Shown piece after piece: positions 1,829 through 20,341 of a DNA stretch of 64,000 nt. The notes beneath the pieces are model-generated. The model ran no database searches and had not been told where the DNA came from. It saw only the letters and a list, made by a program, of their open reading frames with translations. A program made the translations under genes and the position numbers. Location of the stretch: the sequence record MN018232.1; one strand, 5' to 3'. Positions within the stretch are counted from its first letter, which is position 1. Each line of letters begins with the position of its first letter.

Positions 1829-3259
1829 TCACATCAGATTCTTCACTGCAACACGTCTGTAGTAACGGTTGGAGTTAACTCTGAGTCTGCCAAGACCTTG
1901 GTCAATACCTTCAGCGAATGGGTTAGCAACGAGACCGTAACGGGTCTTGAAGCCGATTTTTGGCTGGAAGGTGTTCTCACCGACGGCACGAACCATCTGG
2001 AGAGGAACATAAGGACAATAGAACAGACCAGCGTCATAAGGTGAAGAACCCTTATAACCGACGACATAGTACTGGTTACCACCGTTGGTTGCAGCGTTAG
2101 CAGCAGACAGGTTAGCAGAATATGGGTCGATGTAGACGCGGAACTTACCGTTGATGGTACCAGCGAAGGTGTTGCCGGTGTCGTCAACGTTCAGGTTAGC
2201 GTTGAGTGCTGGGGTGTAGTCGAGGATACCAGCCATGGTCAGTGCGGAAGCAACGTCTGCGGAACACAGAATCATGTTGCCCTTGCCACGACGAGTTCTT
2301 TGAGCAATCGCGTTAGCGTCTCTCTCGATCTGGAACAGAAGACCCTTGAACTTCTCAACAGACCAACGACCGTTGGAGTCAACGTCGAGGTCAAATACAC
2401 CAGCAGTTGCAGTGTTAGAAACGGCACCTTGCTCAGCAGTCTTATAGATGGTTCTGATGACTTCGCGGTTGATTTCAGCAAGAATCTCGGTTGAGAGAAT
2501 GTTTGCCAACTCAGCCTCAGCATTCAGACCATGGATTGCCTTGAGGTCTTGTGCCAGTTCCAAGGAGTACTCAGCCTTGAGTGCTCTTGACTTAGCGGTT
2601 ACAGTGACTTTCTCGATCGAGAATGCCATCTGGTTGAAGTGATCGCCAGTACCTGAACCCAGGTTCTCAGCGTCACCAGTTACCATACCCTGACCTACGT
2701 TGTAGGCAGTGGATGATGCAGAACCAACAGGGTTCAGAACTGATGGGTTAGTGCCAGACTGTGAGGTTGTACCCAGACCAGCATTAGCATCAGACATGCC
2801 TGCGGTCAGGTTGAAGCCGTCATCCTGACCAGAGAATGCGGTATCGACTTCGTTGTAGAAGGTCTCGGAGCCAGACTGGTTCTCGTAGCGAGATCTCATT
2901 GCGAAGATCAGGCCAGTAGGACCGTTCATTGGCTGAACGCCTGCGAGGTCATATGCGACCAGGTTAGGCATTGCGCGTCTGATCAGGGAGATCAGAACAG
3001 GGTCGAAACCAGCGGTAGGACCAGCGGCAGGTGAGTCAGCACCAAAACCACCAGATGCACCAGCAGCGTTAGCAGCGTTGGTTGGGGTTTCCATCAGGTT
3101 GATACCTGACTGGAATGCTTGCTCCTCACGGAGGAATTTTTCTTGGTTTTCGAGCAGGACTGCGGTTACAGCTCTTCTGTGAGTGTCCTTGATGGGATCA
3201 AGACCTTCATAGTCGAGAAGTGGACTCCACTTTTCCTGCAGATGTTCGGATTGAAACAT
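1829..3259 (-). CDS. g23: Major capsid protein gp23
   Basis: KWSPLL, GVQPMNGPTGLIFAMRSRY, KSRALKAEYSLELAQDLKAIHGL, CPYVPLQMVRA, FQPKIGFKTRYG. Confidence 0.99.
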   Translation of the reverse strand: MFQSEHLQEKWSPLLDYEGLDPIKDTHRRAVTAVLLENQEKFLREEQAFQSGINLMETPTNAANAAGASGGFGADSPAAGPTAGFDPVLISLIRRAMPNLVAYDLAGVQPMNGPTGLIFAMRSRYENQSGSETFYNEVDTAFSGQDDGFNLTAGMSDANAGLGTTSQSGTNPSVLNPVGSASSTAYNVGQGMVTGDAENLGSGTGDHFNQMAFSIEKVTVTAKSRALKAEYSLELAQDLKAIHGLNAEAELANILSTEILAEINREVIRTIYKTAEQGAVSNTATAGVFDLDVDSNGRWSVEKFKGLLFQIERDANAIAQRTRRGKGNMILCSADVASALTMAGILDYTPALNANLNVDDTGNTFAGTINGKFRVYIDPYSANLSAANAATNGGNQYYVVGYKGSSPYDAGLFYCPYVPLQMVRAVGENTFQPKIGFKTRYGLVANPFAEGIDQGLGRLRVNSNRYYRRVAVKNLM

Positions 3260-3300: not shown

Positions 3301-4362
3301 TCACTTTTTGAATGCACCAAGTGCTCTCATGTACTGTTCCATACCTGTAGAGGTAGGAGCAGGGGTTGAATCTACACTTTCAGAGATTGTCTGAGGTGCT
3401 TCAGATTTCGCGGAAGGTGCCTTGGAGAAGTATGACTCCTTCAGGGTCTCCAGCTTTTCACGATATTCTTCTTCACTTTCAAACTCTACACTTTCAGCAA
3501 GTGAAGCGAGCTTCTCTTTCTGGGTCTCAGCAAGACCTTCAGAGACAACTGAAAGAACGATGTCTGCGGTGGACTCAGCGAGTCTCTTATTCAGACCAAT
3601 GTTCTTCTCAATCTGCTCATTGAGTTTAGTCTCCATATCATCAAGTTTTTCTACCATGCTCTCAAGTACATCATATTTTTCTTCAGGGATAGTTACATAA
3701 TGCTCTTCAAAAAGACCCTTCATGCCAGACAGGAAGGATTCAGTCATTTCGGTCTTGAGACCATGTTCGATAGCCAACTCATTCTCGGTCATCCACTCTT
3801 CGCAGACATATTCGAGATATGCGTCAACTCTCTCGGTGAGTTCACCCTTAAGGGCTTGTCTCTCCTCATCCAGACGCTCGGCATACTGGACTTCCAGGGA
3901 TTCCTGGATTTCTTTGATTTTTGAGGTTAATGCAGCTTCAAAGATGACACGTGCCTTTTCTTTGAATTCTTCGGAGAGCTCTTCACCACCGAGGAGTGCA
4001 TTTACGTCCTCTTCGATGTCAACAGTCTCTTCGGTAACTTCTTCGGATTCGGATACAATCTCTTCCTCTTCGAGGACTTCCTCTTCGGTTTCGATTTCTT
4101 CCTTAGCCATTTTCTTCATTGGATCAGCAGCTTTTGCACCCTTATTAACTACATCCTTGACAGTAGCGATCTTAGGCTCTCTGAGCTTTGCAGAATCGTT
4201 GTCAGGCTTGTAGTTCTCAGGGGTAGGACCACCGAGATCTTCGTAGGAAGTTGACAGGCCTTCGCCTGGGCTGGAAAGCTTAGGCATACCTTCAGCAGGT
4301 TTAGCGTTCGCGTTCACAGCAGTTTTAGATTGCTCCATTTCTTGTAAATCTCCACGAGACAT
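3301..4362 (-). CDS. g22: Prohead core scaffold protein gp22
   Basis: Acidic coiled coil with ELSEEFKEKARVIFEAAL; lies between g21 and g23. Confidence 0.95.
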   Translation of the reverse strand: MSRGDLQEMEQSKTAVNANAKPAEGMPKLSSPGEGLSTSYEDLGGPTPENYKPDNDSAKLREPKIATVKDVVNKGAKAADPMKKMAKEEIETEEEVLEEEEIVSESEEVTEETVDIEEDVNALLGGEELSEEFKEKARVIFEAALTSKIKEIQESLEVQYAERLDEERQALKGELTERVDAYLEYVCEEWMTENELAIEHGLKTEMTESFLSGMKGLFEEHYVTIPEEKYDVLESMVEKLDDMETKLNEQIEKNIGLNKRLAESTADIVLSVVSEGLAETQKEKLASLAESVEFESEEEYREKLETLKESYFSKAPSAKSEAPQTISESVDSTPAPTSTGMEQYMRALGAFKK

Positions 4363-4429: not shown

Positions 4430-5080
4430 TCAAAGATTGTTTAAAAAGTCATTGAACAAATCAAGTTTCTTCTCATCAAGTTGACCTTGAGTTACAAGAG
4501 TGTTGATCTGCTTGTAGGTTTTCTTGGCGGCCTGTTCTCTAAGGATACCACCATCCCAAACCCACTCTTTTCCTTCCATAATACCTTCAACGAAAGCATC
4601 TGGTGCAGAAGGATCAGCAACGATATCAGCAGCAGTTGCTAACATGAAGTCGTCACCAACAATGTTTACACCTTCTCTGGTTTGCTTGAGTGACCCAATA
4701 CCTCTACTAGAAACACCCAATTTAACTCCTTCTCCGATGAGTGACTTCGCAATGTTACCCATTGGTGTTGATAAGATTTTTGCCTTACCAATGAAGTTAT
4801 TTCCGTCTTCTTTGAGTGAAATAATTTTGTGACTGACGCGATCAAGATTAACAGTCGGGCCGTCTGGGTGTCCGAGTTCTCCAAGAGCCCTCCCAGAATT
4901 AATATGGTTTTCTGTGTATCTTTGGACTTCCTTTCTCAGGCCTTCCATTTGATACATTCTGCCATTACGATTACAGATGTTACCCTGAAGGAAGATACCC
5001 TCAATGTACATATGTTTCTTACCGCCCTTCTCTTCGACGATAAAATCAACTGACTCGATTTCTTCTCTGATTAGTTTCAT
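4430..5080 (-). CDS. g21: Prohead protease gp21
   Basis: IEGIFLQ, NRNGRMY, ALGELGHP, LGVSSRGIGS, DIVADPSAPDAFV. Confidence 0.98.
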   Translation of the reverse strand: MKLIREEIESVDFIVEEKGGKKHMYIEGIFLQGNICNRNGRMYQMEGLRKEVQRYTENHINSGRALGELGHPDGPTVNLDRVSHKIISLKEDGNNFIGKAKILSTPMGNIAKSLIGEGVKLGVSSRGIGSLKQTREGVNIVGDDFMLATAADIVADPSAPDAFVEGIMEGKEWVWDGGILREQAAKKTYKQINTLVTQGQLDEKKLDLFNDFLNNL

Positions 5081-5910: not shown

Positions 5911-7593
5911 TTAGATTTCACCACCAGGAGGATTCTTAGTTGTCCCAGGAGCCTCTGGATCTTTAGGTGAAGTTGGTGCCTGCATTGGGTCAATTGGTGC
6001 ACCACCTGCAGGAGGCATACCAGGTGCTGGTGGCATACCTGTCATTGGATCAACCATAGCATTAGGATCAGGAATTACACCATTTTCAATTTCCTTCTCA
6101 ATCAATTCATCCTGTTCAATAATCTCTTCATCAGTCTGACGGAGAATATTTCTTCTTACATAATCCTGTGAGTAATACTTACCAACATAAGGTTCTGCAA
6201 GAGCAGCAAGGTTCAATCTCTCAGTGGTAAGTTCTGCATTCTTGAGTTCTGCAAAATGGTTGTCATACATGAAGTCATATTGAATATGATCTGCCATATA
6301 CTCCCAATCTTCGGGAGTGACAATATTCTTTAGAATCAATTGTGTTCTCAACATGTCACTGAACATTGCTGAGAATCTCTTTCTCATTCTACCAACAAAC
6401 TTGGAGAACTTGATTTCATCTCTCAAAATTTCGGAAGAACGACCCATTGAGAAACCAGTATCACCTTCGATTCTGGTCTCAGGAACATTCAGAGCTCTGT
6501 AGAGTTTTCTCTGGAAGTAATTGATATCAGTAATTTCTCCAAGATTTTGACCACCAGGAAGTGTAGTAATTTCAGTACCACGACCACCTTCTCTACGAGG
6601 TAACCAGAAGTCTTCCATCATAGACATAAACTTCTTGTCATCACGCATCTCACCAGTGTTTGCGTCATAGACCATCTTGTTTCTATAACGCATCATGACA
6701 TCACGAAGGTATTGTTCTGCCTTTACCTTAGGAAGATTGCCAACGTCAATGTAGAAAATTCTACGTTCTGGTGCTCTTGAAAGTCTGTAGATAACCAATG
6801 AATCCTCAATCATCATTAACTGATTGAGTGGTTTGATTGCCTTATGCATCCAGGACAATGTGAGTCCTTTGTTTCTATCTACCAAACCAGAGGTGCAATA
6901 GGTGACAGAATCACGGGTCATCTTGATACCCTTTTGTGGATTCCCACCATAACCAGCACGGGATGTTCCCATGTCTGGTGTGTACATGAAGAACTCTTCT
7001 ACCTCTGGGAAGTTAAATGCAAGATTGTTTGATGCACCAAAGTCATCTCTTGCCTGTTGAAGACTATCTTTACCCTGTTTCTTCAACTTACGGACATATC
7101 TAATCTTAGATGCGTCAATATATCTGAGTTCTTGAATACCTTCTTGAGGATTCTTTTGGTCGATGACCTTGTTATAGTAGAGTCTTCCGTCAATATACCA
7201 GTTACGGAAAATCTCATGTGCCTTCTTATCAAAGTCAAGAAGTTCGAGAATATAACTAAACTCTTCTCTTACAATCTTTTTGATTTTATCACTTGCATTC
7301 AGATTGGACAGTTCAATCTTTACAGGTGAATCGTTTGTATCAGATACAATTGCTTCGTTTACAATATCTTCAATCGCACTATCACACTCTGGATAGAGTG
7401 CCATCTGTCTATATCTTCTGATGAGATCGGTCTCATTTTTGTAGAGACCCTCAATATCTAAGTTATAACTACCAAAAAACCCACTACTAGCGAAGTTCTC
7501 AGATCCATCTTGATTAGAGGGTGGAATCGGAGAGACTACGCCAGAAGGGGTCTTTTCGCTATCTTCAATTGAAAAACCAAATAATCTGGCCAT
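5911..7593 (-). CDS. g20: Portal vertex protein gp20
   Basis: YRLSRAPERRIFYIDVGNLPKVKAEQY, EDFWLPRREGGRGTEITTLPGG. Confidence 0.99.
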   Translation of the reverse strand: MARLFGFSIEDSEKTPSGVVSPIPPSNQDGSENFASSGFFGSYNLDIEGLYKNETDLIRRYRQMALYPECDSAIEDIVNEAIVSDTNDSPVKIELSNLNASDKIKKIVREEFSYILELLDFDKKAHEIFRNWYIDGRLYYNKVIDQKNPQEGIQELRYIDASKIRYVRKLKKQGKDSLQQARDDFGASNNLAFNFPEVEEFFMYTPDMGTSRAGYGGNPQKGIKMTRDSVTYCTSGLVDRNKGLTLSWMHKAIKPLNQLMMIEDSLVIYRLSRAPERRIFYIDVGNLPKVKAEQYLRDVMMRYRNKMVYDANTGEMRDDKKFMSMMEDFWLPRREGGRGTEITTLPGGQNLGEITDINYFQRKLYRALNVPETRIEGDTGFSMGRSSEILRDEIKFSKFVGRMRKRFSAMFSDMLRTQLILKNIVTPEDWEYMADHIQYDFMYDNHFAELKNAELTTERLNLAALAEPYVGKYYSQDYVRRNILRQTDEEIIEQDELIEKEIENGVIPDPNAMVDPMTGMPPAPGMPPAGGAPIDPMQAPTSPKDPEAPGTTKNPPGGEI

Positions 7594-10803: not shown

Positions 10804-11034
10804 CTACCAATCTGGATATTCCCACCGAGACTTTGGACACTTATCCTTCTTTCTCTCTTTGACACCTTCAATAAAACACTCTTTACAGATATAAGAATAC
10901 GACGATGGGACTGCTCCTCTATCCTTCCTTGTTCTATAAAAACCATCCACAAGGTTCTTGACTTCGCCACAACTCTTACACTTTCTATCAGTCAGAAAGA
11001 GATGATTGAGTTCTAGTTGTTCGTCAAGGTTCAT
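10804..11034 (-). CDS. Small zinc-ribbon protein
   Basis: CKSC...FY...CKEC, resembling the N-terminal zinc ribbon of EndoVII-type nucleases but with no catalytic domain. Confidence 0.65.
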   Translation of the reverse strand: MNLDEQLELNHLFLTDRKCKSCGEVKNLVDGFYRTRKDRGAVPSSYSYICKECFIEGVKERKKDKCPKSRWEYPDW

Positions 11035-12701
11035 TAGTAATTAGTCCAAAGTGTCCATCCACCAGCATTGGTACCATACTCATCATATGGACTTGCTGTA
11101 GACCACCTATCACCATCTGTGTCAACGAAAGACCCTTCATCGAGACCATCATTCATAAAACCAAATGGTGCCATGTCTTGTTCAATCTGGTTCTTCTGTT
11201 CTTCATATAATCTCTTTCTAACATCCTGGTCAGTCAACTCTTTGAAGTAGTCCTGAGCAACTAACCATGCATAGATAACCAGACACATTGCAAGGTCATC
11301 ATTACAACCTTCTTCTGCCTCGAATGAGTTTCCTTTAGAGATAAAGGTTGTCAGTTCTGAGATAATCTCATAGTCATTGAATATGAGTTTATTCTCCTCA
11401 ATCATTGTCTTGAGGTTAAGTGCACCAACCTTTTTGACAGTCTTTGACATCTTGACACCAAGTTGGGTTTTTGTACCAGAGAAACCCTGACCAACAACCT
11501 GACCTGCTCTACCTCTCATTGCACACATGAGTAAGTTCTGATATTCTAAGTCGTACTGAAGAATTGACGCAATCTGGTCTCCGATATCATTGACCTCACA
11601 GAGAATGAATGCATTGTTATATGACTTTGCAATCTCCCAAATAATGTTGGGAAACAACATCGGTTTGATGGTATTATTACGATACTTTGCTACTATCTTA
11701 TGGGGAAAAGTTGTGATATCAGCGACGATAAATGCAGAGTAGTCTTCTCCAACACCTCTAGCGACATCAACAGTAACCACATAGTCATGGTCTGATTTTG
11801 GTTCTTCATGGACATCTAATCCAGCACTCTGTTTGATTGGGTTATCGTATACAAGAGTTTTCAGTTTACTGGGTGCAATCAGTGTATCGACAGAACCAAG
11901 GAACTCACACTCAAACTCAATTTTGAATTGTTGTTCAGACGTGTTCTTAATAGTCTGTTCTTTCCAGACTTCGTCCCTTCCAGGGACTTCAGACCAATGA
12001 ACGTCTGTTGGTATATATTCATTCTTACCTTTTTCGGCATCATGCCACATACGGTAGAAATGATTCATACCGTGTGGGGTAGAGACGATAATTACTTTCG
12101 TTGATTTACCAGAAGTAATAGTAGGATAAACAGAGGCAAAGAAGGCATCTGCAATATGGTTTGGAACGAACGCAAATTCGTCGAGGAAGAGAATGTTAAA
12201 CGACATGCCTCGGACAGCACTTGCAGACGTAGAAGCAGCCAGTATCTTTGAGCCATTTTCTAATTCAATGTTACCTTTGTTCCATACAAGAATACCTTGT
12301 TGCATCCATTTAGGAAGGTTCTCATATGCTGTTGCTAGTCTACCTAACAATTCACGAGCTGTCGTGGCTTTGTTTGCTAGGATACCAATATTAACACTAT
12401 CGTTGAAAATAGCATAATGTAAAAGATAAGATACACAAGTAGTGGACTTACCTGTCTGTCGTGGCATTTTACAGATGTTAAATCTGTTGTTGTGGAAGTT
12501 GTTGATAAGTTTTTCTTGGAATTCATAAGTCTTAAATGGTTGAAGACCATGGTCCAAGGTCACAATCTGTACATAGTTTTGTGCAAAGTAAACTGGGTCT
12601 TCCTTACACTTAATGTATTCCTCAATCTGTTCTTTAGTAAACTCAATTGGGGTATTCGCCTTCTTGAGAAGAGGATTACCCAAATATACATCATTACTCA
12701 T
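11034..12701 (-). CDS. g17: Terminase large subunit gp17
   Basis: Walker A-like MPRQTGKST, Walker B LFLDEFAF, nuclease motifs VDVARG and DDLAM; uninterrupted. Confidence 0.99.
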   Translation of the reverse strand: MSNDVYLGNPLLKKANTPIEFTKEQIEEYIKCKEDPVYFAQNYVQIVTLDHGLQPFKTYEFQEKLINNFHNNRFNICKMPRQTGKSTTCVSYLLHYAIFNDSVNIGILANKATTARELLGRLATAYENLPKWMQQGILVWNKGNIELENGSKILAASTSASAVRGMSFNILFLDEFAFVPNHIADAFFASVYPTITSGKSTKVIIVSTPHGMNHFYRMWHDAEKGKNEYIPTDVHWSEVPGRDEVWKEQTIKNTSEQQFKIEFECEFLGSVDTLIAPSKLKTLVYDNPIKQSAGLDVHEEPKSDHDYVVTVDVARGVGEDYSAFIVADITTFPHKIVAKYRNNTIKPMLFPNIIWEIAKSYNNAFILCEVNDIGDQIASILQYDLEYQNLLMCAMRGRAGQVVGQGFSGTKTQLGVKMSKTVKKVGALNLKTMIEENKLIFNDYEIISELTTFISKGNSFEAEEGCNDDLAMCLVIYAWLVAQDYFKELTDQDVRKRLYEEQKNQIEQDMAPFGFMNDGLDEGSFVDTDGDRWSTASPYDEYGTNAGGWTLWTNY

Positions 12702-12707
12702 AAAAAA

Positions 12708-14267
12708 TCAATCCTCAATAAAAGTAACAGCACATTCTGCCCTTTGTAGGTTAGAATCAGAAGAAATTGCCATTGTAAGTGTTCTTTGTGGTGGTAAAAC
12801 AATTCTTAGTGACTCAAGATCAATTGTTTCTGGAGCACCGTTTGTGACACAAAATACTGCTATTGGTTCTCCACCAATAATTTGAGCATCAGATCTTGAA
12901 TATGATGATGCATTTCCAAGAGGTTCATAATCAAGAGGATTGTCAGTTGGAGCATCAAGATATAAGTATAGAAAACAAGGTGCTGTTGATGATGCTGTTG
13001 TTAGAGCACTTACTTTTTTGATTAAGAGTTCTCTCTGATTAATTTTATTATTGTCAATCAAACCACTCTTTAAACTTAAAAGATGGTATTTTATGTTAGT
13101 GGTATTCATTCCACCAGTCTTTGATCTAAAGGCAGCGATTGGATTAGTTGTTGTATTCACAAGACCTTCAATCGCACCCATCATAGATGCGCCAGATACT
13201 GTTACACCAGTACCAGTATTGCCATCTAATTCAGCAGCTACATAACCAATTTTGAGTGATGGATTATCTAAGTGGACATTATTATTTTGGTTAGTATAAT
13301 GAATATGATGGACAGGCATAATATCGCCAGTTTGTTGATTCTCAACAGCTAGTCTTATTTCACCAACACCCAACCAACGATAATTAATTTGATATACATT
13401 TAACTTTGTTGGATCTATTTTCATATTAGATGGATTTGTACTTCCACCAACACCAGTTAAAGTATCGTGATTCCAATCTTCTTGGTATGTCCATTCATTT
13501 GTTTGATTTACTCCTACCTGAGAGGTTGATCCTGTTGCTACAAGATCACCATCACTTACGATTGAAAATGTTCCTGATAATGGACCAACAGTTGTAGATA
13601 AGAAATCTAGATATCCATTTTTACGATCAACTATCCATCCATTATATGTGTGTGTTCCAATACCAGTTGCATTTTGAGTTGATGTTCCTGCACCAATACT
13701 AACAGTGGTTGCAATTCCAGCAAGTGTTACTGTAATATTTTCTGTACCACTCGCTGGTGTTGTGATGAGAAATCTGTGAATATGTGCCTTACCACCATTC
13801 GCTCTTAAAAAACCAAACTTTCCTTCAGTGCTGTATCCGACCTGAAGTGCTTGTTCTTGAGAGAAGAAACCTGCTCTTTGTGTATACCCTGTTGCAATAC
13901 CAGAAAACTGTGCTGTAAATCTTCCAAGAGCACCTTGTCCTGGACGATATCTTACTGCTCTTTTAGAACGAATAACACCATACCCATAAGCACCAGTTCC
14001 ACTTTCAACTTGCATGAGAGTTGAAGAAGTGGTTATACCAGTCCCATTTGTAAATAATTCAAACCTATCTGAGTTTAAACCATATATGGCATCAAGTTGA
14101 AATATTGGATAAATTTGAGAGACAATTTGTTCTCCAAATGCACCACTTCCACTTGCAGTTCCACCACAGTTATCAATGTTGCCGTATCTGTCGGCACACA
14201 TGTATACTTCAAATAAACTTCTTTCTTGGTTTAGATAATCTTGATTAATCTTATTCCACTGAGCCAT
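12708..14267 (-). CDS. Hypothetical protein, probably virion structural (beta-sandwich-rich)
   Basis: Long Gly/Thr-rich ORF in the g16-g17 insert; no enzyme motif recognised. Confidence 0.55.
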   Translation of the reverse strand: MAQWNKINQDYLNQERSLFEVYMCADRYGNIDNCGGTASGSGAFGEQIVSQIYPIFQLDAIYGLNSDRFELFTNGTGITTSSTLMQVESGTGAYGYGVIRSKRAVRYRPGQGALGRFTAQFSGIATGYTQRAGFFSQEQALQVGYSTEGKFGFLRANGGKAHIHRFLITTPASGTENITVTLAGIATTVSIGAGTSTQNATGIGTHTYNGWIVDRKNGYLDFLSTTVGPLSGTFSIVSDGDLVATGSTSQVGVNQTNEWTYQEDWNHDTLTGVGGSTNPSNMKIDPTKLNVYQINYRWLGVGEIRLAVENQQTGDIMPVHHIHYTNQNNNVHLDNPSLKIGYVAAELDGNTGTGVTVSGASMMGAIEGLVNTTTNPIAAFRSKTGGMNTTNIKYHLLSLKSGLIDNNKINQRELLIKKVSALTTASSTAPCFLYLYLDAPTDNPLDYEPLGNASSYSRSDAQIIGGEPIAVFCVTNGAPETIDLESLRIVLPPQRTLTMAISSDSNLQRAECAVTFIED

Positions 14268-14270
14268 AAT

Positions 14271-14588
14271 TTATACCCAATCTAATTTTGCTGGATGATA
14301 CCTTTTATCGTCTTTAATCTTTATTGATTTATCAGAGTTTTCTCTCACATAAATCTGTTGAACAATTGCACCAGGATACTCATCTTGAAGAAACTCTGCA
14401 AGTTGATTTCTTGATGGAATACCATTTTCAGTAACCATAGAAATTCTATGAATACTACCTTGATACATTACATCTGCAGAAAACTCTTCACCTACACTTT
14501 GAGTGTTTGAATCGGAACCATTTACGATAAGTGTGTCAACATGTTGAATATTGACACTTTCTTGAAGAAAATCTTGAAAACTTTTCAT
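14271..14588 (-). CDS. Candidate internal head protein with capsid-targeting-like N-terminus
   Basis: N-terminus MKSFQDFLQE resembles T4 IPII/IPIII CTS MKTYQEFIAE; shares the PSRN..L...YPG..VQ module with the upstream ORF. Confidence 0.55.
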   Translation of the reverse strand: MKSFQDFLQESVNIQHVDTLIVNGSDSNTQSVGEEFSADVMYQGSIHRISMVTENGIPSRNQLAEFLQDEYPGAIVQQIYVRENSDKSIKIKDDKRYHPAKLDWV

Positions 14589-14589
14589 A

Positions 14590-15882
14590 TCAACAGTTCC
14601 ATGCTCTAAGGGACTTATTGATTCTGCTATCGGGATCGTTAGCAGTTTTGGAAGAAGTCAATTTCTTCTTCATACCTTTCATTCTTGCACAGAAAGATGC
14701 TCTTCTCTTATTACCAACTTTCTTTGATGGTGCTTTTAAATCAGAGCCAGGGTTATCTCTCTCGTAGGACTTACGACCCTTCTCATTTAATCCTCCCTCT
14801 TTGTTTTGTCCCTCTTTACGAGTCCAGGCTGCTCCTTCCGAGACTTCCATAGAACCATCATCATTAGTGCTTACTTCTTTAGCATTCTCATCCCAGTAGG
14901 AACCACCATATGCACAGTCAGATCTAGTTTCCAACTTCTTACACTTTGGACAATACTTTAACTCACTCCCTTCTTTTACACCAACATTCAGAACTGCATC
15001 TGTAGGTTGGAATGTTGTAAGGTCAAATCTTTGAACCATACAACCTGGATAGACTTTTGCAAGTGCATCCTGAACTTCATTTCTTGATGGTTTCTTCACT
15101 TCAGGGAAGAAGAGCTTCATCATCATATACTTACCTCTCCAGGTAAATGCTACAGCATAAACATTGCCAGTCTGTGCTGGAACTCTGGTTGACTCCTCAA
15201 TGGCATCTTTGAGTGGAAGTTCACCTTTGAGTTTTGCAATAACTTGTTCTCTCACACTTCCCTTTGGTACACAGTTAGGGACCATACGGTTACCCTTTTT
15301 CTTCATACCTCTTTGTTCGTGGGTTTTCCAACAAGCTTCATCAACAACTTCTACTTCAATACCATTCTTTCTCATGGCATCGATTTGGAGTTCTGTGAAC
15401 TCAGGGAGTGCCAAGAACTCTTCTTTCTTGGTTGAACTACCCCAGTTTTTAGCACCCTTCTTGCGACACTTTACCAATGCCCCAGAAGCATATGCAGAAG
15501 GCCATACGGAATAACGTGACTTGACCTTATGGTAACAAGCATCTTTCTTGCCCGAACCCTTACCCTTCTTATCCTCTTCGTTAAAGGTTTCTTCTTTCAT
15601 TTTCTTCTTAGGTTTGTCGGTTGAAACGTAAGTTGGTTTTGCAGCACCACTCTTTTGTTGTTGATTGGGGTCTGCAGCCTTCTTTCTTCTTTGAGCAGAT
15701 TTTCTTTCTGCAGGAGTCATACTCGCTCTTTTAGATGAAGAAACACACTTTGGTGTACCCTCACCAGGTTCATCACTTGCACAGGTACCACCTGTCACAA
15801 CATTAACCCAACCACTTTTACCATCTTTAGATTTGGATCCTTTGAACCACTTGTGGAGATTACCTTCCTGCATTTTGATCAA
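14590..15882 (-). CDS. Modular Lys/Cys-rich hypothetical protein (possible internal head polyprotein)
   Basis: Chain of short basic modules separated by Glu-rich linkers; ATAAATA late box at ~15893-15899. Confidence 0.55.
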   Translation of the reverse strand: MIKMQEGNLHKWFKGSKSKDGKSGWVNVVTGGTCASDEPGEGTPKCVSSSKRASMTPAERKSAQRRKKAADPNQQQKSGAAKPTYVSTDKPKKKMKEETFNEEDKKGKGSGKKDACYHKVKSRYSVWPSAYASGALVKCRKKGAKNWGSSTKKEEFLALPEFTELQIDAMRKNGIEVEVVDEACWKTHEQRGMKKKGNRMVPNCVPKGSVREQVIAKLKGELPLKDAIEESTRVPAQTGNVYAVAFTWRGKYMMMKLFFPEVKKPSRNEVQDALAKVYPGCMVQRFDLTTFQPTDAVLNVGVKEGSELKYCPKCKKLETRSDCAYGGSYWDENAKEVSTNDDGSMEVSEGAAWTRKEGQNKEGGLNEKGRKSYERDNPGSDLKAPSKKVGNKRRASFCARMKGMKKKLTSSKTANDPDSRINKSLRAWNC

Positions 15883-15898
15883 AGATTTTAATTATTTA

Positions 15899-16846
15899 TC
15901 AGATACCGATTGATGTATAGGTATTCAGTTCGAATGCTAATGATTTCCATTCAGAACCAAGATACATCTGTACTTTGTTCTCGGTCGTATTAAAAATCAA
16001 TGCACCTTGAGTTACAGTTAATGCATCTCTCTCGGACGTTGTTAGTGTTGGTGGATAGAACTGTGAAGATGCAGTAATGATTCCTGAGACAGTGGTGTTT
16101 GATGACACATTTTCAGTACCACCTGCACCAGCAGAAATACCAGTTAAATTAGAACCATCACCATAATATGTGTCTGCATATACATTTGCAAACCTAGTAC
16201 TATTTGTTCCTATATCTACAGTACTATCAGAATTTGCTAAGATATTTCCAGTAAATGTTGAGCTTCCATTTACTGTAAGACTTGTACCATTTAAGAGTTG
16301 AAGACTATCACTTCTGAATCTTGCAGAAATATTTTGTGACCCACCTTTAATGTGAGCAAATTCAATGATACCATCTTCGGTTCCATTACTGGCATCTAAG
16401 ATCTTACCAGTAATCTTAGCGTAATTTCTTTCTACACCAGTATCACTTTCACCAGCAAACTTAATCTGTCCCAGATAATCTCCATCATCTGGGGAAGCAC
16501 TATTCCTATAAAGTTTGAATTCTGGTGCAGCGGAGCTTCCTGTGTCTGTAGAGACAATAGTAACGTTGGATGTTATGTTACCATTAAAATTTACGTTGTT
16601 ATTAAACGTTGTGATGCCAGATATGTTTATTCTTCCATCATAACTGATACCAGTTGCACCATAATTTTCAACCCATGGGTTGACGACAGATACTGTGGTT
16701 CCAATACCAATACCACCAGTATCGACTTTTAAAAATAATTTACCATCATAAGTATTAAGTGCTAATTCACCCGTCTCCAGATTCGAGAGTGCAGGAATCT
16801 TTCCCGCTACAGATGAGCGCTTAAACTTTACCTTTGGAGCCGCCAT
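15899..16846 (-). CDS. Fibre-like protein with T4 gp37-like N-terminus
   Basis: KFKRSSVAGKIP..L.TGELALNTYDGKLFLK parallels the T4 gp37 N-terminus (QFKRSK.AG..P..L.EGELAIN..D). Confidence 0.65.
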   Translation of the reverse strand: MAAPKVKFKRSSVAGKIPALSNLETGELALNTYDGKLFLKVDTGGIGIGTTVSVVNPWVENYGATGISYDGRINISGITTFNNNVNFNGNITSNVTIVSTDTGSSAAPEFKLYRNSASPDDGDYLGQIKFAGESDTGVERNYAKITGKILDASNGTEDGIIEFAHIKGGSQNISARFRSDSLQLLNGTSLTVNGSSTFTGNILANSDSTVDIGTNSTRFANVYADTYYGDGSNLTGISAGAGGTENVSSNTTVSGIITASSQFYPPTLTTSERDALTVTQGALIFNTTENKVQMYLGSEWKSLAFELNTYTSIGI

Positions 16847-19912: not shown

Positions 19913-20341
19913 TTAACTATTTAGATCTTTGTTGACGTTTTTCAACATTTTTTGCAAATCTGCTGTGCTGCCAACAAAAAGTGCATTATTAGTTACAGAA
20001 GTAGGTCCCTTCTTATCTTCCTCATTTACATCTTTAAGTTTTTTCTGTAAATCCATCAATTTATCAGTTGCGTCAGAGACATTCTTAATCAACTGACCTG
20101 CAACTTCATATGCACGAGGCATTTCACTCTCTTGAGCAAGTTCTAAGATACCGTTGATTGCTTCTTGTCCTTTTTCAATGATCGAATATAAATTACCCCT
20201 AGTATACTCGTAGTCTTTACGGATATCTTCGTTGGAGTTTTCAAATTTTGTGATTTGTCTTTCGACATCATCCTTCTTTTCTGTCTTAACTTCAATCGGT
20301 TCGACATCAAATGTTTCGTTGAGCTTTTCATACTTATCCAT
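19913..20341 (-). CDS. g16: Terminase small subunit gp16
   Basis: DYEYTRGNLY, PRAYEVAGQLIK, TNNALFVGSTADLQKMLK; follows g15. Confidence 0.9.
   Translation of the reverse strand: MDKYEKLNETFDVEPIEVKTEKKDDVERQITKFENSNEDIRKDYEYTRGNLYSIIEKGQEAINGILELAQESEMPRAYEVAGQLIKNVSDATDKLMDLQKKLKDVNEEDKKGPTSVTNNALFVGSTADLQKMLKNVNKDLNS

Follow-up and report, generated by a model that had tools for sequence, protein, structure and literature searches.

A putative T4-type capsid targeting sequence and a predicted gp21-processed modular polyprotein in the cyanophage S-B43

Introduction

To our knowledge, the loading of head cargo by a capsid targeting sequence (CTS), together with processing of that cargo by the prohead protease gp21, has been described only in bacteriophage T4 and phages closely related to it; giant phages have an analogous process. 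Here, we describe two adjacent genes of the T4-like cyanomyovirus S-B43 (a Synechococcus phage of the Kyanoviridae; MN018232.1), one encoding a 105-residue protein with a CTS-like leader and the other a 427-residue basic protein built of modules. The window that was analysed is a stretch of 64 000 nucleotides identical to positions 1–64000 of this record. On balance, we favour the interpretation that the products of both genes enter the prohead as cargo and are processed by gp21 in the manner of the T4 internal proteins. A preliminary description of the stretch had proposed a targeting leader and a late, protease-cut and virion-associated polyprotein, with an anti-defence role for the cleaved pieces; comparison with other phages lends support to the former, whereas the anti-defence role found no support.

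T4 gp21 cleaves after the motif L/I-x-E, and in T4 an Asp at leader position 10 prevents processing yet leaves targeting intact. In the leader of the T4 internal protein IPIII, suppressor scanning assigned residues 4 and 7 to targeting and residues 8 and 10 to processing (PMC9026906). S-B43 resembles T4 in that it has a ten-residue leader of the form M-K-x-aromatic-x-x-F-I/L-x-E with the gp21 motif at its end, small cargo, late genes, and a homologous protease and scaffold. It differs from T4 in that the mature parts share no sequence similarity with the internal proteins, the mature part of the 105-residue protein is acidic, and packaging and cleavage are predicted here. Furthermore, S-B43 has only two leader-bearing genes, whereas T4 has a polymorphic cluster of internal-protein genes, and the T4 internal proteins are hypervariable, whereas the DUF6321 module of the large S-B43 protein is strongly conserved.

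The large protein may also be compared with T4 gp22, gp67 and gp68 and with the inner-body proteins of phiKZ, 201phi2-1 and SPN3US, in which one product is cut at several Glu sites in the prohead, as is predicted here, and some of the pieces stay with the DNA. Unlike in those proteins, the S-B43 pieces are discrete, conserved and shuffled modules that are found as separate genes in other phages, and for this reason the large protein would appear to be a true cargo polyprotein rather than a degraded scaffold. A further parallel is T4 Alt, an enzyme that is packed in the head and injected: an NMNAT-like enzyme with a removable-looking N-terminal leader is found in cyanophage virions, but Alt lacks an IPIII-type leader and its enzymology is different. 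In the literature searched (subscription literature excepted) there was no mention of DUF6321, its modular junction sites or its leaders, and the terms 'capsid targeting sequence' and 'cyanophage' were found together only in a T4 review which is silent on a cyanophage CTS.

The two genes

Both open reading frames (ORFs) named in the preliminary description were confirmed on the minus strand, at 14271–14588 (105 residues) and at 14590–15882 (430 residues from a TTG codon). GenBank annotates the large ORF from the ATG at 15873, giving 427 residues, and its close homologues begin MQEG or MNEG; the ATG is thus probably the true start and the TTG start three codons too long. Residue numbers of the large protein nevertheless follow the 430-residue numbering throughout. 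The features on which the argument rests are as follows.

14271–14588, minus strand: 105-residue protein (phrog_1742)
14559–14588, minus strand: CTS-like leader of the 105-residue protein, residues 1–10, ending L-Q-E/S
14343–14498, minus strand: folded core of the 105-residue protein, residues 31–82
14274–14312, minus strand: C-terminal tail of the 105-residue family, with K95, R96, H98, P99, K101, L102 and W104 nearly invariant
14590–15873, minus strand: DUF6321/T4-GC119 modular basic protein, 427 residues, isoelectric point (pI) 9.6, proposed head-internal polyprotein

The ATG of the 105-residue gene lies one base past the stop codon of the large ORF, and since only this base separates the two, translational coupling of the small gene to the large ORF is likely.

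The leader of the 105-residue protein

The 105-residue protein begins MKSFQDFLQE followed by Ser. In the T4 record, IPII and IPIII begin MKTYQEFIAE followed by Ala, and IPI begins MKTFKEF. The likeness to the T4 CTS pointed out in the preliminary description therefore holds against the IPII and IPIII leaders, and it is conserved across the family. Across 120 homologues, M1, K2, F4, F7, E10 and the I, L or M at position 8 show little or no variation. In an alignment of 81 homologues, M1, K2, F7 and E10 never vary, F4, S11, N13 and I14 hardly do, position 8 is always occupied by I, L or M, and the variable part is residues 15–33. The leader has the aromatics at positions 4 and 7 of the T4-type CTS skeleton and closes with the gp21 motif as L8-Q9-E10/S11. 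The positions fixed in the family (4, 7, 8 and 10) are the targeting and processing positions identified in T4.

The AlphaFold2 model of the 105-residue protein consists of a helix at residues 4–10, a disordered stretch at residues 10–30 and a strand–strand–helix–strand core at residues 31–82 (predicted local distance difference test, pLDDT, of about 80). As judged from this layout, the leader is a conserved peptide that is tethered to the domain and stands outside its fold. A second conserved site, V-G-E/E, is found at residues 32–35 beside the start of the core. The phrog_1742 profile matches residues 1–97 with E = 6e-24. Although the tail, KRYHPAKLDW, hardly varies within the family, the model gives it low confidence; possibly it serves as a binding peptide.

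T4, Syn9, S-SCSM1, S-B43 and one podovirus (826 kb, both strands) were scanned with a DNA pattern of the leader. The pattern gave eight matches in the five genomes, every one at an annotated start codon, compared with 0 for a reversed-pattern control. The matches are T4 ipII, ipIII and 61.1, the small gene of S-B43 and S-SCSM1, and the cytidylyltransferase/NMNAT-like gene of S-B43, Syn9 and S-SCSM1. In S-B43 the last of these lies outside the window.

72536–73834 of MN018232.1, minus strand: cytidylyltransferase/NMNAT-like protein (T4-GC190), with a CTS-like leader followed by Ala-Arg

Nearly all members of the NMNAT-like family (116 of 120) begin MKSF-[F/L]-x-F-[F/L/I]-[S/T]-E followed by Ala-Arg, and T4 IPII likewise continues with Ala-Arg past its leader Glu. 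The T4-GC190 enzyme has 25 peptide counts in the S-SM1 virion and is also found in S-SCSM1 virions. The S-SCSM1 authors remark, without explanation, that NMNAT-like proteins recur in cyanophage virions; a CTS on these enzymes, if true, would explain their repeated presence there.

The pattern is also found on DUF6321 proteins. P-SSM7 gene 194 begins MKTYSQFIEE, in which seven of the ten residues are as in T4, P-TIM40 gp114 begins MKNFAQYIEE, and Syn1 gene 112 begins MKSFKQL and has I-N-E directly ahead of the domain. Nine of the 16 complete short DUF6321 proteins from IMG/VR carry a 12-residue variant of the leader ending L-C/A-E, followed by Ala. The same leader on three unrelated cargos, including a virion enzyme, fits a portable targeting signal. 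Together with the conservation across the family and its fit to the T4 mutational map, this portability supports, by comparison, the assignment of the 105-residue leader as a T4-type CTS.

In one IMG/VR contig (DUF6321 ORF at 3497–4252 of L089) a CTS-like MRSFGQYIKE lies within a longer protein, immediately ahead of the DUF6321 domain, and is seemingly the remnant of a leader-bearing gene fused to upstream modules.

The large protein and its modules

The C-terminal module of the large protein (residues 359–428) is a clear member of DUF6321 (Pfam PF19846; E = 6e-22, 78.5 bits against a cut-off of 28.5), a family without a described function. The protein also matches phrog_727 and phrog_3477, and many PHROGs cover separate pieces of it. 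Its relatives number more than 8000 at 90% clustering, and the family, which corresponds to T4-GC119 according to GenBank notes and gene sizes, is found in 15 of 16 reference cyanomyoviruses. Seven module profiles (A–G) describe architectures such as A-B-C-D-E-G, in which D is variably duplicated or F inserted; IMG/VR loci display further module orders, and some homologues bear extra N-terminal modules. Several homologues start at a junction Met (M-x-E and then a module), which looks like a leftover of cassette shuffling. Copies of the DUF6321 module from Prochlorococcus and Synechococcus phages share 80–92% identity, and their identity to the pelagiphage copies is 60%.

Module E is a homologue of the 105-residue protein. 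A module shared by the two ORFs had been noticed in the preliminary description, and both BLASTP (105-residue protein against the large protein, E = 1e-4) and the phrog_1742 profile (large-protein residues 226–285, E = 4.7e-4) concur; an iterated module-E profile recovers all 121 small proteins. In the AlphaFold2 model of the large protein only module E (pLDDT 82–91) and the DUF6321 end are confident, and most of the chain is predicted to be disordered.

Cleavage at the conserved junction sites would give, in place of one chain of 47 kDa, six products, which have predicted masses of 5.0–9.7 kDa; five of the six have pI values of 9.3–10.4, and several modules contain Cys pairs.

15595–15864, minus strand: predicted product 1, residues 7–96, module A and basic tail, 9.7 kDa, pI 10.2, from M-Q-E/G to M-K-E/E
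15337–15576, minus strand: predicted product 2, residues 103–182, modules B and C, 8.9 kDa, pI 9.3, from F-N-E/E to V-D-E/A
15193–15336, minus strand: predicted product 3, residues 183–230, module D (Cys-Trp motif), 5.4 kDa, pI 9.6, ending I-E-E/S
14971–15192, minus strand: predicted product 4, residues 231–304, module E, strand–strand–helix–strand, ending V-K-E/G
14836–14970, minus strand: predicted product 5, residues 305–349, Cys-rich module F and acidic spacer, 5.0 kDa, pI 4.6, ending V-S-E/G
14593–14835, minus strand: predicted product 6, residues 350–430, DUF6321 module, 9.0 kDa, pI 10.4

Junction sites and the protease

The six Glu sites listed in the preliminary description all have the form hydrophobic-x-Glu and are conserved at module boundaries in the homologues. 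One of them, QE/GNLHKW, is in S-B43 merely the N-terminus (Met-Gln-Glu), but homologues with N-terminal extensions have it as a genuine internal junction. Of 245 distinct contexts preceding modules A, B, D, E and G, 209 have a hydrophobic-x-Glu site at a fixed offset; random positions gave 17.9 on average and never more than 30 in 1000 trials. There is no conserved site of this kind between modules B and C. V, I, L or M occupies P3 in 94% of the junction sites, and Ala or Gly occupies P1' in 65%. Since P3 and P1 are kept while P2 and P4 vary freely, the sequences indicate that a pattern, rather than one inherited sequence, is conserved. All of the predicted junction sites fall in segments of the AlphaFold2 model with pLDDT below 50, which are modelled as disordered. 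Taken as a comparison of sequences and models, these observations support the view that the large protein has the layout of a polyprotein processed by gp21.

The proposed protease and scaffold are encoded a few kilobases away.

4430–5080, minus strand: gp21 prohead protease, proposed processing enzyme, matching the T4 gp21 structure 5JBL with E = 1.6e-23
3301–4362, minus strand: gp22 scaffold, very acidic, with 27 hydrophobic-x-Glu sites, proposed docking partner of the leader and of the basic modules

The former is a true homologue of T4 gp21, as had been proposed, and retains the catalytic His and Ser, at positions where the crystallized mutant has Ala. In S-B43, gp23 has a single L-M-E site, near the position at which T4 gp23 is cut. 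We also note that the gp21 N-terminus, MKLIREEIE followed by SVDF, resembles the junction between leader and mature part in the 105-residue protein (LQE followed by SVNI). A T4 review suggests that the N-terminus of gp21 itself is a targeting propeptide.

Presence in virions

T4-GC119 is represented by 13 peptide counts in the S-SM1 virion (Sullivan et al., 2010, Table S8); the same table lists it as absent from the S-PM2 genome. In S-SCSM1 the homologue of the large protein is ORF29, with 49% identity across the modules that align, and mass spectrometry is the basis of its annotation as a virion protein. The presence in virions that had been proposed for both proteins is thus borne out for homologues of the large protein in S-SM1 and S-SCSM1, but not for the small one, the orthologue of which carries no virion flag in S-SCSM1.

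Proposed processing and points against it

We propose the following course of events, in which targeting, cleavage, the location inside the head and ejection are all inferred. The leader helix of the 105-residue protein, with its aromatics at positions 4 and 7, would dock the protein to the scaffolding core, and gp21 would remove the leader after L-Q-E10, perhaps with a second cut after V-G-E34. What remains would be an acidic domain of 8–11 kDa with the strand–strand–helix–strand fold. The 427-residue polyprotein would consist of small, mostly basic modules (5–10 kDa, pI 9.3–10.4) on flexible acidic linkers, each linker ending in hydrophobic-x-Glu and followed by Ala, Gly or Ser, and gp21 would dice it into about six pieces. 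For this protein, which is leaderless and very basic, the likeliest route of entry would be electrostatic co-assembly with the gp22 core, which is very acidic. Inside the head the pieces would stay alongside the DNA, and they would probably leave with it at infection; by analogy with T4, such injection is plausible.

Several observations weigh against this proposal. No cleavage products have so far been observed, and the large S-B43 protein bears no leader of its own. Across 72 IMG/VR loci the co-occurrence of a CTS-bearing small gene with module E of the polyprotein is weak (counts of 7/26/5/34, odds ratio of about 1.8). The hydrophobic-x-Glu motif is short and occurs inside modules too, for example in the invariant GGLNE of DUF6321, and Val- and Glu-rich acidic linkers would by themselves yield such sites to some degree with no need for a protease. 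The leader pattern is also found on T4 gp61.1, an early 54-residue hypothetical protein with no known role in the head, which begins MKTFKEFIKE. Among the virion data, T4-GC119 is present in the Syn9 genome yet was undetected in Syn9 virions (Sullivan et al., 2010, Table S8). In S-SCSM1, ORF30, the orthologue of the 105-residue protein, is unflagged even though both of its neighbours are flagged. As ORF30 offers at least two good tryptic peptides, a copy number like that of the T4 internal proteins should have shown. This result, from one proteome, is the main evidence against such a copy number for the small protein.

The weak co-occurrence in the same 72 loci also bears on an adaptor arrangement, in which the 105-residue domain would pair with module E and escort the polyprotein; we do not claim it.

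Alternative explanations

The large protein might instead be an uncleaved structural or decoration protein of the capsid surface, neck or tail, with its junction sites a by-product of acidic spacers. It is annotated as structural, the genes that lie with it between g16 and g17 are tail-fibre-like and virion genes, its linkers are indeed Glu-rich, and the virion proteomics is silent both on location within the particle and on cutting. Such a strongly basic and mostly disordered protein would be unusual as an external part, however, and the site keeps its hydrophobic P3 and its Glu P1 at one fixed offset amid variable neighbours. The myovirus standalone copies also have CTS-like leaders, whereas the podovirus copies have neither leader nor site, and we regard a surface or structural role as quite unlikely. 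We hold it unlikely, too, that the N-terminus of the 105-residue protein is a generic amphipathic helix that happens to resemble a CTS, the protein being a late assembly factor or chaperone that is not part of the virion. The unflagged orthologue in S-SCSM1 and the occurrence of the pattern on gp61.1, which is not known to be packaged, would suit this explanation, and the tight spacing to the end of the upstream gene would suit a partner or chaperone. Against it, the pattern is rare (the eight matches and empty control described above), the invariant positions are exactly those that are functional in T4, and the leader also occurs on an enzyme that recurs in virions and on DUF6321 proteins.

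If the modules are packed in the head as small pieces, exit with the DNA is possible, as for the T4 internal proteins and Alt (PMC9026906), and the preliminary description had taken the pieces to be anti-defence or host-takeover effectors like T4 IPI*. Our searches gave this no support. A PADLOC search returned no match to a known anti-defence or defence-related family, and no Pfam match was found beyond DUF6321. Foldseek with the model of the 105-residue protein found nothing in the PDB at E ≤ 0.001, a protein atlas yielded nothing beyond the viral clusters of hypothetical proteins to which the protein itself belongs, and the best VIA-align hits (Z up to 4.8; phi29 p6, T7 Gp2 and ribosomal proteins) are at noise level. 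The weak fold likeness of module E to phi29 p6 and T7 Gp2 provides leads only. The modules are moreover extremely conserved across phages of different hosts, unlike arms-race effectors, and it is their order and number that vary while their sequences hardly do. We therefore consider an effector role of the IPI* kind to be very unlikely. Because of the high identity of the DUF6321 module given above, a conserved role is favoured over that of an arms-race effector. The basic modules would most likely act on DNA, for example by neutralizing its charge or condensing it, or on a host target that is itself conserved; we consider a fast-evolving anti-defence role less probable.

Were prohead loading and gp21 processing of the two S-B43 proteins to be true, the CTS/gp21 mechanism would extend to the most abundant myoviruses of the ocean, with the signal kept almost letter for letter, and the abundant DUF6321/T4-GC119 family would gain a testable role. 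Existing virion mass-spectrometry data would be open to re-reading for semi-specific cleavage after Glu, and the ten-residue tag could serve to pack reporter proteins into cyanophage heads.

DUF6321 in podoviruses

DUF6321 is also found as a standalone protein of 84–94 residues in phages that have no prohead protease, directly after the capsid gene in the T7-like P-SCSP1k and in the pelagiphage HTVC104P. These two copies have neither a leader nor a junction site. In P-SCSP1k the gene after DUF6321 encodes a 58-residue basic protein with the GLYANIHAKRKR motif, and in one cyanomyovirus contig (L065) a single ORF contains, in order, a leader, the GLYANIHAKRKR module, E-L-E-E and DUF6321.

These observations allow a broader proposal, which we advance tentatively and regard as doubtful. 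Marine phages in general might pack a shared toolkit of tiny conserved basic proteins in their heads, including DUF6321, the GLYANIHAKRKR module, the Cys-Trp modules and others. Podoviruses would encode these as separate genes by the capsid gene, and T4-like cyanophages as shuffled polyproteins that are diced by gp21 and loaded by a CTS kept since the common ancestor with T4; the CTS would also load the NMNAT-like enzymes. The toolkit would be injected and would act on DNA or on a conserved host target within the first minutes of infection.

Two further observations were made on the podovirus genes. Both phages encode DUF6321 and other tiny lysine-rich proteins straight after the major capsid gene (P-SCSP1k genes 16 and 17; HTVC104P gp77 and gp76), and these may be head-internal too. 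In the GGLNEKGR segment of the DUF6321 module (14590–14835 in S-B43) the Glu of the myovirus copies creates L-N-E, and both podovirus copies have Ala at this position.

Gene neighbourhood and late expression

Both ORFs belong to a minus-strand run of late structural genes flanked by g16 (19913–20341) and g17 (11034–12701). The head genes gp23 (1829–3259), gp22, gp21 and gp20 (5911–7593) are located a few kilobases away. Two further features adjoin the pair.

15893–15899, minus strand: late-promoter-like ATAAATA, 20 nucleotides upstream of the ATG at 15873
12708–14267, minus strand: 519-residue virion structural protein (phrog_1645), beginning 3 nucleotides past the stop of the 105-residue gene, in the same late run

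The ATAAATA element agrees with the late expression of the large ORF that had been proposed. The same heptamer is found 22–38 nucleotides before gp22, gp20 and several other late structural genes, and 16 of its 18 matches in the window are on the coding strand. We take it to agree with the T4 late promoter TATAAATA and with the form NATAAATA reported for cyanophages. Elsewhere in the window, a 102-residue ORF on the minus strand (1435–1743), between the capsid and tail fibre genes, has Cys/His motifs like those of an HNH endonuclease.

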